Below are positions 7,252-61,176 of a stretch of DNA of 64,000 nucleotides, piece by piece (position 1 is the stretch's first letter; the number at the start of each line of letters is the position of its first letter). The position numbers were made by a program, and so were the translations under genes. The stretch is from Epiperipatus broadwayi. Taxonomy: Eukaryota > Animalia > Onychophora. The DNA is taken from positions 15,252,001 to 15,316,000 of the forward strand of contig JAQFVV010000009.1 in the NCBI GenBank assembly GCA_028023455.1. The letters run 5' to 3'. The notes under the pieces were generated by a model. It was not told the DNA's origin, did no database searches, and saw only the letters and a list, made by a program, of their open reading frames with translations.

Positions 7252-10200
7252 GTATAAGCCAAGGTCCTTACTATATTTATTCTATTAGCTTTCTCTCTTA
7301 CCCAAGTGTAATCACTTTCATATTTGTTTTGTTTTTTAGATTTTCATTCATATATAATATAGTATTGAAAATTACACTAAATTTTATTCCTTCTTTATAA
7401 TGTAATACTAGTTTTGGTTTTTGTTCATTTGAAAATGTATTCACTATTGAAATTATAATTTTAAATATATAGATAGCATGAAATATATATTTTTAGTATA
7501 AATTTATCTACCAGGATTAAGCAATTTAAATATGACAATAAAGTCATTGGTCTTTTTTAATTTCTTAGTTTCATGGAACAAAATGATTTTTAGATAAATA
7601 AATTAATACATTTCAAAGTTTGTTCAAAATAATAATATAAATAATTGATCCCTTTTTGAAAACTTTTATTACAAAATAATAAAACAATTAATAATGCTTT
7701 TTTAAGACAATTTATTGAATACATTTTTATTAGTTATATATAATGCAAAGATTTAAAAATATCAAATAAAATAATATTATATAATTATTTTTCTAAATCC
7801 TTTTTTATAAACTACTAAGCCAACTCAGTTGCATTATAATCACTTGTATTGAACTCTACAAAATTATTCATAATGGTGTTGGAATTGTCGGTATATTGAA
7901 AAACAAATTCTTATGATATAAAAGTGATTCTACAAATTAGTCCCATTTTTATCTCTTTCTTGGGAATTATCAATAGATAAAATAACTCCAAAGTGCAAGC
8001 ACCCCCTTGACTATATGAAAAAAGTTGTTTACATTATGTTAGTAAAGGAATGGGATTTTTTTTTAAAGCGATTTCTTTTGTCTTAAAGTTATTTTCATTA
8101 TTTAAAATTATATTATGATTTTAGAAATGTAATGCAATAAAGTTGATAGTATAAATCCAAAGAAAGTGACAAGCATTAATGAGATGGACTACTCCATCAT
8201 ATATAACAGTAAAAGTGTCAATGTGAGCTTGAAAAAACAAATAGATAAGGGCCATTCTAAAAAGATATCATTCAAATTTTCACCAGAAGTTGATTTCAAA
8301 ATAACAGCATCTAATAAAAATAGTAATAATATTTTAAAATATTAGTGCCACATAAGAACATCATTAAGGTACTTAATAGTCAACAGCAGATGAATTTAGA
8401 AATGGTGGCTATCATACGATGAATATAACAAAGGTGATTATTACCAAAATTTTACATTTCATGATCAATTTCTAAGGAGATGTCATGTGGCATTCACGAA
8501 TTAAAATATTCAAGTTACACATAAAAATTGTATTCACCAGAATGTGATTTCTCATCTTTTTTAAAAAATTCCCCTCAGTTAGTGGTCAATCAAGAATGTT
8601 TTTAAGAGGGCCTTGAATTTATCAGTTTTGATACTGAACCAATGATTCAATTAAATTACAAAATATTGAAAAGAATGAAATATTATGCAATATTACAATA
8701 GTAAGAGATTTTAGAATGTTTTAATAATTTTCCAAACTGTGAAGTGATTTTTGGACATTTTGGAAAAAAAAAAATTATTTTGTCTGTATGTATTATTGAT
8801 GTATATTTTTAAAAAGTATTTCTTAGATTTAAAAAAAAAAAAAAAGCTCATTAAATGTTTTAATTGAAATGTAACTTTATATGAAGCAAAAACATGAACA
8901 TTTGGAAAAAAGAGTAAACTTTTGATATATGGATTTGAAGAATATAAAAAAATAAATTGGAAAGATTAAAGTTATTGAAATGTTGATGAGAATAAATGAA
9001 ATGATATTAGTTATGAAAATTATGAAATAAAAAAAGAAATTGATTAAAAATTACTATAGCTGCTGAATACATTGCTTGATCATAGCACTTAACTGCCTAC
9101 AATCTATTTTCATGTCCATTGTCAGTTAACTAAGTTTCAATAATATATATTTTAATTTTTTATTTAGTATATACATATATCTATATAAATACATAAAGAA
9201 TACTTTGTGTGCCACAAATGTATATTACATACTGTTTCCTGCTATGAGCGAATATCAGTATCCATAACAAGATTTAGAATTAAATATCAGAATATAGGAA
9301 AACTACTGGATGCTTATATGTTTGCAGATAGAAGAAATATAATAAAAATATGTTGGATTTGTGAAAGCTAAGAGACAGAAAAAAGAACAAAGAAATTGAT
9401 CTATAATCTAAAAAAAATAAAAAATTATGAGTACAGGGTGCAGAATTATTATATGGAGTCTACTTTTTGGCATATAATTAATGGTAAACGATAATTTTAA
9501 TTTTTAAATTTACACTTTTCTTATATAAAAAAAAAGACAATAAGCTTTTTAATCTTTTACCATAAATTTCATTTATTTGTTAATAGACATTTTACTAAGT
9601 TTCAAAATTATTCAGTAAGACAATTTTGAGATAAACAGCTTCTCCTTAAACAAAGTCAGAAGTTTTTATGCATGAGCTGTATATCCAAAATCTTGAAAAC
9701 AAATTGACCATATCTTTCATCTACTTCTTTATTCTTTATTATCCAAAAATTTTTTCCAGCTCGATTCATTTTTTTTTTCACCCTAGCCCCTTTTAAAAAA
9801 AGCTGTTTAATTAATTCTATTATTCTATTCTATTCTTATATTCTCCAATTTTATATTGTTTTAAACAAAAAATTATAAAGACAACTCTTTCACTCCCTTT
9901 ATTTTTAAATGTTTCTCACTCATAATAGAAATTATCTTGATTCTCCTTCCTCTAAAAAATAAGTGTTTTATATTTCCTATCCATCTCCACATAAACTACA
10001 TCTACTATACTATCCTAATTCTTGTTCATGTTTTTCTTCCTTTCCTGATTTCTAAACCTCTTGCACTAAATAAGAATAAGTTCTCTTTGTTATTCATATT
10101 CTTTCTTCATATTTCTACTTCTTTTTCTCTAATCAATTAATATATCCTCTTTTTCCATCCCTTATAATTATGAACCAATAATATATTCTCTGCACATTTA

Positions 10201-17200: not shown

Positions 17201-17379
17201 AAAATATACATGATGTTTTGTAAATTTCATAGAAAGCACATATTATAAACATGTTTAATAAGTAAATAAGACATTGATATGTGTTTGTTGTTGTTTAAAA
17301 AAGTTTGAGTTTCTTTCTTTTGTCCGACTATGGTTACGATTTTGATATCTTTTATTTTAGCATTACAAACAACAGAACA

Positions 17380-17450
17380 CTAACCCTAAACTAACCCTAA
17401 AACTAACCCTAAACCTAACCTTAAACCAACCCTAAAACTAACCCTAAACT
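17380..17450. repeat. Telomere-like minisatellite, ~6 degenerate units of CTAACCCTAAA
   Basis: ctaaccctaaa ctaaccctaaaa ctaaccctaaa cctaaccttaaa ccaaccctaaaa ctaaccctaaa. Confidence 0.9.
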
Positions 17451-17478
17451 TACACAATTGTTTTGTTATGTAGAAAGC

Positions 17479-17673
17479 AATAATTAAGCAAAAGACATCG
17501 CTAAATAGACATCACAGAGTAGCAGCTTCATCCAAAAACAGCGATTTAAAAATTAAAAAAAAGGTTGTCGTTTACCAATAATTAAGCGAAAGACATCGCT
17601 AAATAGACACCTCAGAATAGCAGCTTTATCCAAAAACAGCGATCTAAAAATAAAAAAAAAGGTTGTCGTTTAC
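17479..17673. repeat. Tandem duplication, 2 x ~98 bp
   Basis: aataattaagc.aaagacatcgctaaatagaca...ggttgtcgtttac starts at 17479 and again at 17577. Confidence 0.9.
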
Positions 17674-41790: not shown

Positions 41791-42419
41791 AAATAACAAT
41801 CTAGCAGATAATGAAAAAAATGTCTAATTATTCTTTCACTTCTATAGAAATAAAGAAGAAAAATTCACTGACCCAAATTATCTGGGACTTGACGTTCAAT
41901 GAAAATATGTTCTTTGCTATTACTCTATAAATGGAGTTATAATAACTCTATACTATTTAAATCTTTTTGCCTTGTTTTACTTTATACAAAAATTATTTTT
42001 CAAATAATTTCTGCATAATAATCTAAATTTCTTCAGATTAATTAATTATACTTGTATAATGTGGAGAAGAAACGCTGTGGATCAGAAAAACTGAGTTAAA
42101 CGTGAAAATAACTTCATAATGCAGTAGACTAATAGTTGAAAATGATGATGATGAAATAACTATTTAACTATTCTTAACCAGAAGTAAACAAAGAAGAAAA
42201 ACATACGAAACATTCTCATCTGGGAATTGATAAGCACAATGAGAAATAGCTTTTTCACTATTCTTCAGTTAATAGCTGAAATACACAGGCTTATATATAC
42301 CTGTGTCTATATATGTAATACATAGGGTATTTGAGCACAAAATTTCACATAACCCACCACTCTCCATATTATCTCATAACAATGATACACTCGAACACAC
42401 ATATGTTGAAAAGATAATC

Positions 42420-42463
42420 ACCAATATACGCATTTCATGCTAAACCAGCAATCATCAGTTGGT
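42420..42463 (-). ncRNA. Minimal type I hammerhead ribozyme, family A
   Basis: Reverse complement reads accaa-CTGATGA-ttgct ggttt agcat-GAAA-t gcgt a-TA-ttggt. Confidence 0.8.
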
Positions 42464-42704
42464 CCAGATTACCATCTCTACATATATATACTATAAGTGT
42501 TCAGATATATATTAAGGTAGCCAAACCTCATACTTTAATGGACAGGCTTCAATATACTCCACACTCCAACTCTTCAATCATCCATTCAACTGAAAATCTG
42601 ATGATGAATGCTCAAAGACCACCCTGAGACCGAGATTCTTGTCACACCCATGTTGACCTAAGGTCAATCTGACCCCTCACATACAGGACATAATCCATTT
42701 AATA

Positions 42705-43201
42705 CAGGGGTGGGCAAGTAGCGGCCTGGGGACTACATGTGGCTCGCTAAGAGTTTGTATGCGGCCCACCAAGACAATCAGAAAAATCCATCTTGGATTG
42801 AGATTTTCTTTCCATTGCCTGACCTAATATCCACCTCACATTTTCAACTAGGATGGCCACATCAATACTCATGCACAGTATAGATACGATGTGCAGTGCT
42901 TTTCCAATTTGATCTGATTAATTTCAATTTTGTCTTTGCATTAGCAAATATATATATTTCCAACTTTAGTGAAACCATGAATGCTCCAAAAAAAATGTAA
43001 AATCAGTAATGAATGTCATGTGTTTAATGAAGAAAGGACAAACAAATATTTCTTTGGTAAAACAGGGAATAAAGCAGTGTGTTTATTATGTCATGAGAAA
43101 AGATGTGACCCTCCATTAACCTTTGCTTCTACAAAGTGGTCCCCGATTCAGCCCTCCACCAATCTATGCGGCTCCCGATCCAAAACAATTGCCCACCCCT
43201 G
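42705..43201 (+). mobile_element. Non-autonomous hAT (Buster-type) deletion derivative nested in the family A element
   Basis: Perfect 13-bp TIRs CAGGGGTGGGCAA / TTGCCCACCCCTG. Perfect TSD atttaata (42697-42704 / 43202-43209). Retains a transposase N-terminus (KKCKISNECHVFNEE...KYFF...KAVCLLC). Confidence 0.95.
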
Positions 43202-43665
43202 ATTTAATACACATAGAAGGGATGGGCAGACACCTCTACTTATGTAATAGCTGAAACACACAGGCTTGTATATACCTTTGTCTATATATGTAATATATAG
43301 GGTATATGAGCACAGACTTTCACATGACCCACCACTCTCCACACTACATATATAGACACGGGTATAAGCCTGTGTGTTTCAGCTATTACATAAGTAGAGA
43401 TGTCTGCCCATCCCTTCCATGTTTATTAAATGGATTATGTCCTGTACATGAGGGGTCAGATTGACCTTAGATCAACATGGGTGTAACAAGAATCTCGGTC
43501 TCAGGGTGGCCTTTGAGCATTCCATCATCAGATTTTCAGTTGGATGGATGGTTGAAGAGTTGGAGTGGGGAGTAGATTGAAGCCTGTCCATTAAAGTATG
43601 AGGTTTGGCTATCTTAATAAATATCTGATCACTTATAGCATATATGTGTAGAGATGGTAATCTGG

Positions 43666-43709
43666 ACCAACTGATGATTACTGGTTTAGCATGAAATACA
43701 TATATTGGT
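43666..43709 (+). ncRNA. Minimal type I hammerhead ribozyme, family A (stem II mismatch)
   Basis: accaa-CTGATGA-ttact ggttt agcat-GAAA-t acat a-TA-ttggt. Confidence 0.78.
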
Positions 43710-44142
43710 GATTATTTATCTTTTCAACATATGTGTGTTAGAGTGTATCAGTGTTATGAGATAGTGTGGAGAGTGGTGAATCATGTGAAAGTCTGTGCTC
43801 ATATACCCTATATATTACATATATAGACACAGGTATATATATAAGCCTGTGTGTTTCAGCTATTACATAAGTAGAGGTGTCTGTCCATCCCTTCTATGTG
43901 TATTAAATGGATTATGTCCTGTATATGAGGGGTCAGATTGACCTTAGATCAACATCGGTGTGACAAGAATCTCGGTCTCAGGGTGGCCTTTGAGCATTCC
44001 ATCATCAGATTTTCAGTTGGATGGACGGTTGAAGAGTAGGAGTGTGGAATAGATTGAAGCCTGTCCATTAAAGTATGAGGTTTGGCTATCTTAATACATA
44101 TTTGAACCCTTATAGCATATACGTGTAGAGATGGTAATCTGG

Positions 44143-44186
44143 ACCAACTGATGATTGCTGGTTTAGCATGAAATACGTATATTGGT
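44143..44186 (+). ncRNA. Minimal type I hammerhead ribozyme, family A (best copy; AUA triplet, predicted cleavage after 44181)
   Basis: accaa-CTGATGA-ttgct ggttt agcat-GAAA-t acgt a-TA-ttggt, with palindromic AUACGUAU stem III. Confidence 0.85.
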
Positions 44187-45184
44187 GATTATTTATCTTT
44201 TCAACAAATGTGTGTTCGAGTGTATCAGTGTTACGAGATAGTGTGGAGAGTGGTGGGTCATGTGAAAGTCTGTGCTCATATACCCTATATATTCTTCAGT
44301 TAAGGAAATTATAGAGGCTTTTTGTTATTTAAATTTTCCTGCATTGTTTTACATTATATATATATATGAACAAACATATGAAATACTGTAGAAGTAAATT
44401 ATTCTTCACACTTGTTATTGATTTAACCTAAATTTTTTCGGATTAATTAATTATACTTAATAAAAGTTCGGATTACTTAAATAAATATAATTTAATTTTG
44501 TTTATCCCCTTAGAAAAGAAACTTTTCTAATATGACCTTCACAGTCAGCTTTATTACTCAGGTCTCTCGAACATCTAAGTTTCTCTCAATAACGTCAACA
44601 CTGTCTGCTTAAAATTACTTGGATATATCAAAAAAATTCTTCTTATAAACAAACAATTTTATGGCAAACAAGTATTTTCTTCTAAGTTTAACGCTGTCAT
44701 TCAGCCAATTTAAATTCCATCATCTTTTTACAAACCAAGAACAAAAATTGGGAGGAGGGTAAAATTAACTAAAATAGATTTGGTGTGCCTATTTTAATTT
44801 CTAGGCACGAGTTTTCACGTCAGTCTGGAACAAGGACAGTTAACAAGACAACATTGCCACTTTAATCACATTACACTGTGCAGTTCAGTAACTATGGTAA
44901 CTCTCTTGTTAGCAGCTTGAAAAGTTCTCAAGCACAAACAAACAAAATAAAAAAAAAAAGCTCTCATTGCTGCAAACTCCAAAGATTTCGAACAAGAATC
45001 CAGGAGGATTTCTTTATAAAGATAGAGAGAAGTAAGTGAAGTGAAACAAATAAGACTGCTGACAATTCAATTCTGACAAGAAACATGTCTTGAATAGAAA
45101 GTGTATCTGCTGAGAAAGATCTTCAAACTAGGAATTTTTAACCCTTTTAGGATGACAATCGCTGAAATTTACAACTTTAAAGTA

Positions 45185-45688
45185 GTAGCTGAAACACACA
45201 GGCTTATATATACCTGTGTCTATATATGTAATATATAGGGTATATGAGCACAGACTTTCACATGACCCACCACTCTCCACACTATCTCATAACACTGATA
45301 CACTCGAACACATATATGTTGAAAAGATAAATAATCACCTTAGGTCAACATGGGTGTCACAAGAATCTCGGCCTTAGGGTGGCCTTTGAGCATTCCATCA
45401 TCAGATTTTCAATTGGATGGACGGTTGAAGAGTTGGAGTGTGGAGTAGATTGAAGACTGTCCATTAAAGTATGAGGTTTGGCTATCTTAATATATATCTG
45501 AGCACTTATAGCATATATGTGTAGAGATGGTAATCTGGACCAACTGATGATTGCTGGTTTAGCATGAAATACGAATATTGGTGATTATTTATCTTTTCAA
45601 TATATATGTGTTTGAGTGCATCAGTGTCATGAGATAGTGTGGAGAGTGGTGGGTCATGTGAAAGTCTGTGCTCATATACCCTATATAT
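45185..45688 (+). mobile_element. Second family A insertion: inverted head (45185-45338) plus partial direct monomer
   Basis: 12-bp TSD aactttaaagta (45173-45184 / 45689-45700). Same outer termini as 42273-44289. Confidence 0.92.
45539..45582 (+). ncRNA. Minimal type I hammerhead ribozyme, family A
   Basis: accaa-CTGATGA-ttgct ggttt agcat-GAAA-t acga a-TA-ttggt. Confidence 0.82.
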
Positions 45689-46475
45689 AACTTTAAAGTA
45701 TTATAGTTTAATATCCCAACAAATATTAAAGCTTCAGTTGCTCAAATGCACATATTTGTGTATATAAAATAATTAAAATCATTTTTGAGGCTGGCTATTT
45801 TGAAATACGGACTCTAATATATTTATTTCACAGAAAGCAGTGCTGAATTTCTTACCATAGGGGGAGATTTAATATTTTGTACAATAATTAGTACATCTAT
45901 TAGTCAAGATCATAAACCAGCATTCAAATCTGCACGCAAACTGGATTTTTTTTTCAAGTAGCTAACACACACACACACCTTAACTAGTCACAACAATACT
46001 GATTGGAAATGAGTAATTAACTATCCTAGATAGTAGATAAAATCAAGATGAAAAAATATTAAAAACTTTCGCCATCAAACAATTCGCAAGCCTGGTAGTA
46101 TTTTCTACTTTAATCTCTTATATAAGATAGAGGGACTGTTGGAAAGACTACTCAATGAATATTTTTGCCTTAAATGTATAAAAATATATAACTTTCTAGA
46201 TATGTTTTATTTGTGAAGTTACCAATAATTAAAAAATAATGTGTTGCTTGTCATTTTTAATCAATAAATGTATCTAATAATATAAAAAAAAATCACTGTG
46301 AAAGTTAACATTTACTACGCTTATGTGTACAAAAACCTTCATAATTATCTTCATTAAAACTATTAATAAATAAATTCAGTAAATTTATATATGCTAATAT
46401 AATAACAAACTAGATATTTTTAATATTAATATTAAATAAACAATCAAATGGTTTGCTTGGAAATTTCTAAGAAAT

Positions 46476-60976: not shown

Positions 60977-61176
60977 CCCAAACCACAGTATATATAGATA
61001 GAAAATTACTACAGTTTAATCGATAAGTGTCAAATGTTTAGCCCTCACACCTTTAACACAAATTACTTATTGAAAGTATTTGTATTAAAGGTGTTAGGGC
61101 TGCACATTTGAAACTTATCAATTAAACTGTAGTACTAAACAATGATAAATATATGTGTAAGAGATTGTGGTCTGAG

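Follow-up and report, generated by a model that had tools for sequence, protein, structure and literature searches.

A hammerhead-bearing, non-coding repeat family of Epiperipatus broadwayi with the insertion layout of Penelope-like elements

Analysis of a 64,000-nucleotide (nt) stretch of the genome of the onychophoran Epiperipatus broadwayi (contig JAQFVV010000009.1; hereafter the window) indicated that the interval 42259-44303 is very probably a single insertion of a non-autonomous, non-coding retroelement, which can be described as an animal retrozyme without long terminal repeats (LTRs) and equally well as a non-autonomous Penelope-like element (PLE). The element belongs to a repeat family, here termed family A, with a unit of 477 nt, and clearly exemplifies a kind of element already known, not a new one. 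A previous sequence-only reading of the interval had proposed a multimeric hammerhead element integrated in one event between target-site duplications (TSDs), and this was borne out by dispersed copies with TSDs of their own, variable 5' inner junctions and fixed 3' outer ends.

Positions within the unit are numbered q on the first direct monomer, 43363-43839, with q1 at 43363. Tandem Repeats Finder (TRF) returned 43363-44293 with a period of 477, 2.0 copies and 94% matches, and a repeat finder showed 42270-42706 and 43202-43346 to be complementary at 88-96% to the direct 477-nt copies. Monomer mapping resolved the structure into an inverted arm, which extends from q400 at the centre outward through a full unit to q26 (581 nt, 1.2 units; followed from the outer end, it descends from q26 to q1 and, in the following unit, from q477 to q400), and a direct arm from q455 to q454, which is exactly 2.0 units. 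The approximately 1.2 inverted and 2 direct units counted in the sequence-only reading were confirmed. The 5' truncated end of the inverted arm abuts the direct arm at 43346, and the inner junction near this position shows 1-2 nt of microhomology between the arms. An exact 14-nt direct repeat, TATTCTTCAGTTAA, bounds the whole structure and overruns the element ends by 3-4 nt per side. Because of this overlap, the true TSD measures 6-14 bp. The GC content of the family A units is 37-39%, compared with 26% in the window, where the CpG observed/expected ratio is 0.26. As had been claimed, the monomers are non-coding: no open reading frame (ORF) of at least 50 aa was found inside them, and the unit has no ORF for a reverse transcriptase or a GIY-YIG endonuclease. 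The features of the insertion, including a nested miniature inverted-repeat transposable element (MITE), are as follows.

42259-42272, no strand: left TSD TATTCTTCAGTTAA, exact repeat of 44290-44303, its last 3 nt overlapping the element end
42270-42317, minus strand: tail, an overshoot of about 48 nt of the inverted arm's outer 3' end (q26) past the short terminus (q455), from monomer mapping
42270-42704, minus strand: outer part of the inverted arm (q26 down to q62), which stops at the MITE, from the BLAST layout and inverted repeats I1-I6
42400-42484, minus strand: hammerhead module within the inverted arm, with core 42458-42433 and minus-strand cleavage predicted after 42425, from a motif scan and the covariance model (84.4 bits)
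42705-43201, no strand: nested MITE, 497 bp, hAT-like, with terminal inverted repeats CAGGGGTGGGCAA, from the sequence and inverted repeat I20
43202-43346, minus strand: inner part of the inverted arm (q69 down to q1, q477 down to q400), from the BLAST layout and the sequence
43346-43362, plus strand: beginning of the direct arm (q455-q477 less a small deletion), from repeat D7 and the sequence
43363-43839, plus strand: direct monomer 1, 477 nt, from the TRF period of 477; 14 differences from the family majority
43645-43729, plus strand: hammerhead module within monomer 1, with core 43671-43696 and cleavage predicted after 43704 (covariance model, 93.2 bits)
43840-44293, plus strand: direct monomer 2 (q1-q454), which ends at the short 3' terminus, from TRF and the BLAST layout
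44122-44206, plus strand: hammerhead module of monomer 2, core 44148-44173, predicted cleavage UA↓U after 44181 (covariance model, 97.4 bits)
44290-44303, no strand: right TSD, exact repeat of 42259-42272, its first 4 nt overlapping the element end

A search of the genome (5.6 Gb, 18,588 contigs) revealed 39,814 occurrences of the exact 26-nt ribozyme core, compared with 0 for a reversed control, and more than 4,829 first-look candidates for the 477-nt monomer at 93-96% identity. In 30 fetched loci, the arms stand head to head, with inner ends lying anywhere in the unit and outer ends fixed. A partial tandem next to an inverted 5'-truncated copy occurs in the insertion of the window and in most of these loci. 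Among the 19 two-armed insertions in this sample, 15 combine an end at q449-463 with an end at q23-34, four have one non-canonical end, and none has two short or two tail ends. Flanking direct repeats of 12-18 nt straddle the ends of 13 of the 15 canonical insertions, and the TSDs of family A vary, measuring about 8-18 bp. Many copies are single-armed. Opposite-strand neighbours within 1.5 kb, counted among the first 100 core matches on one contig, were arranged as (-,+) 15 times and as (+,-) once (binomial p = 5e-4). The arm layout together with this orientation bias implies that the 5' ends face each other and the 3' ends point outward, one 3' end being about 50 nt longer than the other; this one-sided tail measures about 48-56 nt. 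A short hairpin lies between the two start sites, each of which ends in ...TATTA. A second, independent insertion of family A in the window, at 45173-45700, has a 12-nt flanking repeat, AACTTTAAAGTA, with its tail end at q27 and its short end at q456. The layout of the interval, which the sequence-only reading had regarded as unusually clear, is therefore not unusual, the same plan being the rule in this genome.

These statistics bear directly on a foldback or terminal-inverted-repeat (TIR) DNA transposon, in which long arms would be excised and reinserted as DNA. Inverted arms within a direct duplication superficially resemble TIRs, but arm lengths and the inner junction differ in every insertion, so that the family A copies are not replicas of one DNA. 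Moreover, the outer ends are not mirror images (q26 versus q455), single-armed copies are frequent, there is no transposase, and the TSD length varies from 8 to 18. We consider this explanation extremely improbable and discarded it on the different internal structures and non-mirrored ends. Satellite DNA was ruled out by the dispersed, TSD-flanked copies of 0.5-3 units.

The MITE at 42705-43201, which went unmentioned in the sequence-only reading, is a later, separate event. It has 13-nt terminal inverted repeats and is bounded by an 8-bp duplication, ATTTAATA, at 42697-42704 and 43202-43209; since it is nested in the inverted arm, the hammerhead insertion predates the activity of this MITE. 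The tail at 42270-42317 contains a hairpin stem of 7-8 bp (ACACAGG/CCTGTGT), the fold of which was not more stable than that of shuffled controls (z = -1.15). Searching with each flank for an empty-site paralogue yielded no place with both flanks adjacent, only the distal 100 nt of the left flank belonging to another repeat. This distal left flank (42060-42160) is an old dispersed repeat of a different kind (147 first-look candidates, 74-81% identity), and a 35-nt segment related to it recurs across the insertion at 44424-44458.

The published architecture of PLE insertions comprises partial tandems, often an adjacent inverted and 5'-truncated copy, a tail of 30-40 bp confined to one of the ends, and hammerheads within the repeated portion (Craig et al. 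2021, PMC8557442). Family A agrees with this description in every structural point, with a slightly longer tail, and TSDs are variable in both. The likeness to retrozymes and non-autonomous PLEs suggested in the sequence-only reading was thus upheld by the partial tandem, the inverted 5'-truncated copy and the one-sided tail. PLE copies number in the thousands in the same genome, and intact ORFs are present in some of them: more than 10,240 GIY-YIG candidates were found, and open ORFs of 800-901 aa, in tandem plus inverted arrangement, contain YxDD followed by a C-terminal GIY-YIG; Atlas neighbours of these ORFs carry RVT_1 and GIY-YIG. Three open PLE ORFs (L061:4301-7003; L062:4589-7243 and L065:4780-7179, both minus) are extremely K/N/I-rich. 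For these three, a Pfam hmmscan returned no family even at E = 1, which may be due to their composition; the GIY-YIG model matches the same PLE DNA when the genome is searched, and the translation displays YVDD and GIY-YIG motifs. Besides sharing the layout of family A, one PLE family terminates 89 nt downstream of its own hammerhead at the short 3' end and 147 nt or more downstream of this hammerhead at a longer end, a geometry similar to that of family A.

All 5-6 autonomous PLE families sampled carry a minimal U3-A8 hammerhead (39 instances in 38 loci), a variant known in this form from some PLEs (PMC4209133). It consists of UUGA(A/U)AA, one extra nucleotide, a helix II of 6-7 bp with G10.1-C11.1, GAA, ACGU and then U; its helices I and II covary between families, and the palindromic ACGU replaces helix III. 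Examples within loci L031-L068 are found at L061:4168-4205 and 7303-7340, L062:4192 (minus) and L065:4476 (minus). Rfam models applied to five PLE loci detected nothing relevant.

The same layout data were weighed against mobilisation of family A by a long interspersed nuclear element (LINE), for example of the RTE type. Family A would then be an element resembling short interspersed nuclear elements, its inverted arm would arise by L1-style twin priming, and the hammerhead would be a passenger or a 5'-processing device. Variable 5' truncation and TSD length are also seen with target-primed reverse transcription by LINEs, and L1 twin priming likewise involves two priming events at one staggered break and gives an inverted 5' portion together with a TSD. 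In classical twin priming, however, the second priming is internal and the inversion leaves the 3' end unduplicated, whereas both arms of family A begin in the 3' region, so that 3' sequence is duplicated in inverted form, and the offset of the start sites is fixed at about 50 nt. Poly(A) stretches, microsatellites and 3' tails derived from a LINE are absent from both ends. The 50-nt tail recurs systematically on one side (15 of 19), as in PLEs (PMC8557442), and the autonomous PLEs of this genome have the same layout. We regard mobilisation by a LINE as very unlikely.

The three hammerhead-like motifs of the interval share the unit order helix I, CUGAUGA, helix II (4-5 bp), GAAA, the palindrome AUACGUAU and the site UA↓U. 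Helix I of family A is long and built of three segments (AGAU/AUCU, UAAUC/GAUUA and ACCAA/UUGGU). CUGAUGA, GAAA and AUA↓U occur in every copy of the interval, with an NUH site present, and the letters of the catalytic core are in the majority form in 98-99% (106 alignments). Among the three motifs, only that at 44148 is identical to the family majority sequence; that at 43671 deviates by a G>A mismatch at 43680, in helix II, and by CpG decay at 43700, in helix III. Judged from these letters, the topology is that of a classical type I hammerhead with a short, 8-nt palindromic helix III, a type of metazoan hammerhead described as acting only as dimers (PMC4209133). The sequence-only reading had assigned one minimal type I hammerhead to each monomer; type I and one motif per unit were retained, and 'minimal' was replaced by the classical form with a short palindromic helix III. 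Reading the motif afresh reproduced the predicted cleavage position after 44181.

Because the hammerhead models of Rfam were silent on the motif, own fold tests were made, for which a covariance model was built from families A and B. The hammerhead model search proposed earlier was thus negative with the Rfam models and positive with this model, which matched 11 modules in the window; together with two of family D, they make up the 13 motifs in four families that had been counted there. In a covariation test on 12 representatives of sibling families, 82.8% of the cells paired, compared with 26-50% when the partners were slid. Double changes were seen at five pairs (10 cells), a number reached by 0 of 500 shuffles. 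Among them, helix I exchanges A-U for G-C in its distal and C-G for U-A in its proximal part, and in the palindrome G-C takes the place of A-U. Compensatory change in helices I and III thus lends modest support to the predicted three-helix fold, the sequences being closely related. The minimum-free-energy fold of the whole monomer includes helices I and II.

For comparison with public data, assembled contigs of four runs from at least three organisms were used, none of them on record as RNA. The contigs pile up on the core bin and have loose ends at 44127/8 and 43724/37, from which it follows that exactly the ribozyme module is common to other families, the sequence around it being divergent. 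Over 43200-44400, family A is matched at 88% or better by thousands of short contigs, which come from at least three organisms. In two of these organisms, contig coverage is limited to roughly q43-q370, which implies that the 3' third of the unit is specific to closer relatives of the window. In the sibling families, C11.1 and G12 form a CpG, with the decay products U11.1 (giving a G.U pair) and A12 (destroying the core); the window copies at 61155, 60974 and 26108 show both products, CAUGAAA and CACAAAA.

For the proposed mechanism, a PLE-encoded GIY-YIG endonuclease would introduce staggered nicks roughly 8-18 bp apart, and both exposed 3'-OH ends would prime reverse transcription on the element RNA at two neighbouring sites. 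Relative to the predicted ribozyme site, the short end lies 113 nt and the tail end about 161-169 nt downstream, neither coinciding with that site, and these two positions would be where priming takes place. The two cDNAs would extend toward each other and be joined at arbitrary 5' positions, resulting in two head-to-head arms with their 3' ends outward. According to the retrozyme model, adjacent hammerheads are predicted to pair via the palindromic helix III and to cleave the multimeric transcript, and a host ligase would circularise the cleaved monomers.

Some arms exceed one unit and cross the predicted cleavage site uninterrupted, which requires a template that was uncleaved, religated (circular) or multimeric. 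We infer from these arms that a circular or longer-than-unit RNA probably served as template for reverse transcription. In the insertion at 45173-45700, the inverted arm starts at q345, at a distance of 2 nt from the predicted cleavage position, as though synthesis of its cDNA had run to the 5' end of an RNA cut there. Across 46 arms, six 5' ends fall in q339-360 and seven between q439 and q2 of the next unit, giving hints of peaks at both places. Arm lengths within 5% of whole unit numbers were observed for 43346-44293 in the window and for several other arms (loci L021, L025, L030, L016 and L003); in this small sample, they could reflect stops after full turns on a circle or a fixed transcript start.

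Several results weigh against the interpretation of family A as a retrozyme or non-autonomous PLE. The Rfam hammerhead models gave no match at the gathering score in the window or at E values up to 10 in 42000-44600, where the scans returned only chance miRNA-like matches on an AT-rich hairpin near the terminus. In family A, positions 10.1/11.1 at the base of helix II are U.U, in place of the G-C pair that is normally conserved in hammerheads (PMC4209133; PMC2837043). Exact U.U cores are by far the most numerous in the genome, compared with 303 for U.C, about 6,630 for the sibling G10.1-C11.1 and 0 for the reversed controls, so the sibling families with the G-C pair are about six times rarer than the family A core. 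In the isolated module, the predicted fold favours an 8-bp competing helix, CUGGACCA with UGGUUUAG, formed by the helix I 5' strand and loop 2 (window 44140-44167). This helix is 86.5% preserved across the sibling families, with just one double change, and could be an inactive conformer or a remnant of contact between loops. For the monomer as a whole, the fold is not better than that of shuffled sequence (z = +0.63), and unusual self-pairing is thus not predicted, whereas retrozyme circles are described as highly self-paired (PMC7761336). Monomers within an insertion are 95.5% identical, compared with 94.6% between random family members, a gap of 0.9 points that is too weak to prove or exclude a single circular template. 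As to the helper, units of families A, B and D were compared by BLAST with the 38 PLE loci (5-6 families; the genome holds more than 10,000 PLE fragments), and family A showed no sequence similarity to any pseudo-LTR (pLTR) or 3' end in them; the matches were confined to copies of family A, either nested or adjacent, and to degenerate hammerhead modules belonging to other non-coding families. The search for an autonomous partner reverse transcriptase, as advised in the sequence-only reading, thus found PLE ORFs with reverse transcriptase and GIY-YIG but no match of family A to these loci. The hammerhead class of the sampled PLEs, minimal U3-A8, also differs from that of family A.

Some of these points could equally be accommodated by a retrozyme-like PLE passenger whose hammerhead no longer cleaves and is kept as a structural module, the template being an uncleaved multimeric or read-through transcript and not a circle. 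The replacement of the conserved G10.1-C11.1 by U.U in the most successful family, the conserved competing helix, the distance of 113-169 nt between the integration termini and the predicted cleavage site, and the weak in vitro activity of PLE hammerheads (PMC4209133) are all in line with such a loss. On the other hand, the core letters are kept almost throughout, the boundaries of the shared module are exactly those of the ribozyme, compensatory changes keep helices I and III, one arm of the insertion at 45173-45700 starts at a distance of 2 nt from the predicted cleavage position, and retrozyme circles are documented in three animal phyla (PMC7229834). On balance, loss of cleavage appears fairly unlikely. 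A related proposal combines two elements, namely that the hammerhead module is mainly a conformational switch or a recognition element for the reverse transcriptase and not an efficient cutter, and that the constant offset of 50 nt reflects the two priming sites used in double target-primed reverse transcription by PLEs. It is based on the U.U at 10.1/11.1, the preserved competing helix, the one-short-one-tail rule and the start sites flanking the hairpin; taken jointly, we judge the two elements to be quite unlikely.

Retaining the retrozyme or non-autonomous PLE interpretation, family A was compared with described systems. In PMC7229834 and PMC7761336, retrozymes are described as tandem units of 150-450 bp with type I hammerheads and TSDs of more than 4 bp, for which PLE helpers were proposed from co-occurrence. 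Measured against this description, family A resembles the metazoan non-LTR retrozymes in its non-coding, low-GC tandem units of a few hundred nt, the absence of an LTR (a primer-binding site and polypurine tract were not specifically searched for), one classical type I hammerhead per unit with a weak palindromic helix III implying dimeric cleavage, TSDs of more than 4 bp, high-copy dispersal and co-occurrence with PLEs. It differs in the U.U at 10.1/11.1 and in a unit of 477 nt, just over the 150-450 bp given in 2020, and its monomer is not predicted to be unusually self-paired. The sequence-only reading had considered the unit unusually long, but a 2026 preprint reports retrozyme consensus lengths of 51-972 bp (10.64898/2026.07.22.740005), within which 477 nt is ordinary. 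The passages searched of the two retrozyme papers (PMC7229834, PMC7761336) do not mention an inverted copy or a one-sided tail.

Compared with PLEs, family A lacks an ORF for reverse transcriptase or GIY-YIG, has a tail of about 48-56 nt instead of the published 30-40, carries a classical C3-G8 hammerhead and has no similarity to the sampled pLTRs. With the minimal PLE hammerheads (Cervera and de la Pena 2014, PMC4209133; Lunse et al. 2017, cited in PMC7761336), it shares the type I topology, a palindromic helix III implying dimers, paired opposite-strand motifs 100-700 bp apart and thousands of dispersed copies; it differs in keeping an 8-nt helix III and a long, three-segment helix I. Elsewhere in the window, a telomere-like array of six copies of ACTAACCCTAAA was noted at 17379-17673, directly adjoining a 98-nt unit repeated twice.

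According to PMC7761336, animal retrozymes have no conserved motif pointing to the mobilising retrotransposon, and the link between retrozymes and PLEs has so far consisted of co-occurrence and, recently, of pLTR phylogeny in frogs (10.64898/2026.07.22.740005). Here, this link is structural and statistical, since family A reproduces the full PLE insertion signature in a genome whose autonomous PLEs have the same geometry but, where sampled, a different hammerhead class. Of some interest are the one-short-one-tail rule, the similar geometry of an autonomous PLE, the different hammerhead classes of helper and passenger, and the success of the U.U variant, which is relevant to the question of whether the element needs the canonical 10.1-11.1 pair to succeed. 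For genome annotation, family A explains many short palindromic or tandem non-coding repeats that are missed by standard Rfam scans. Being short and present in tens of thousands of copies, it offers a convenient natural data set on PLE tails and inverted copies; if the fixed offset does record two priming sites, the unexplained PLE 'tail' would become directly testable on tens of thousands of small insertions.

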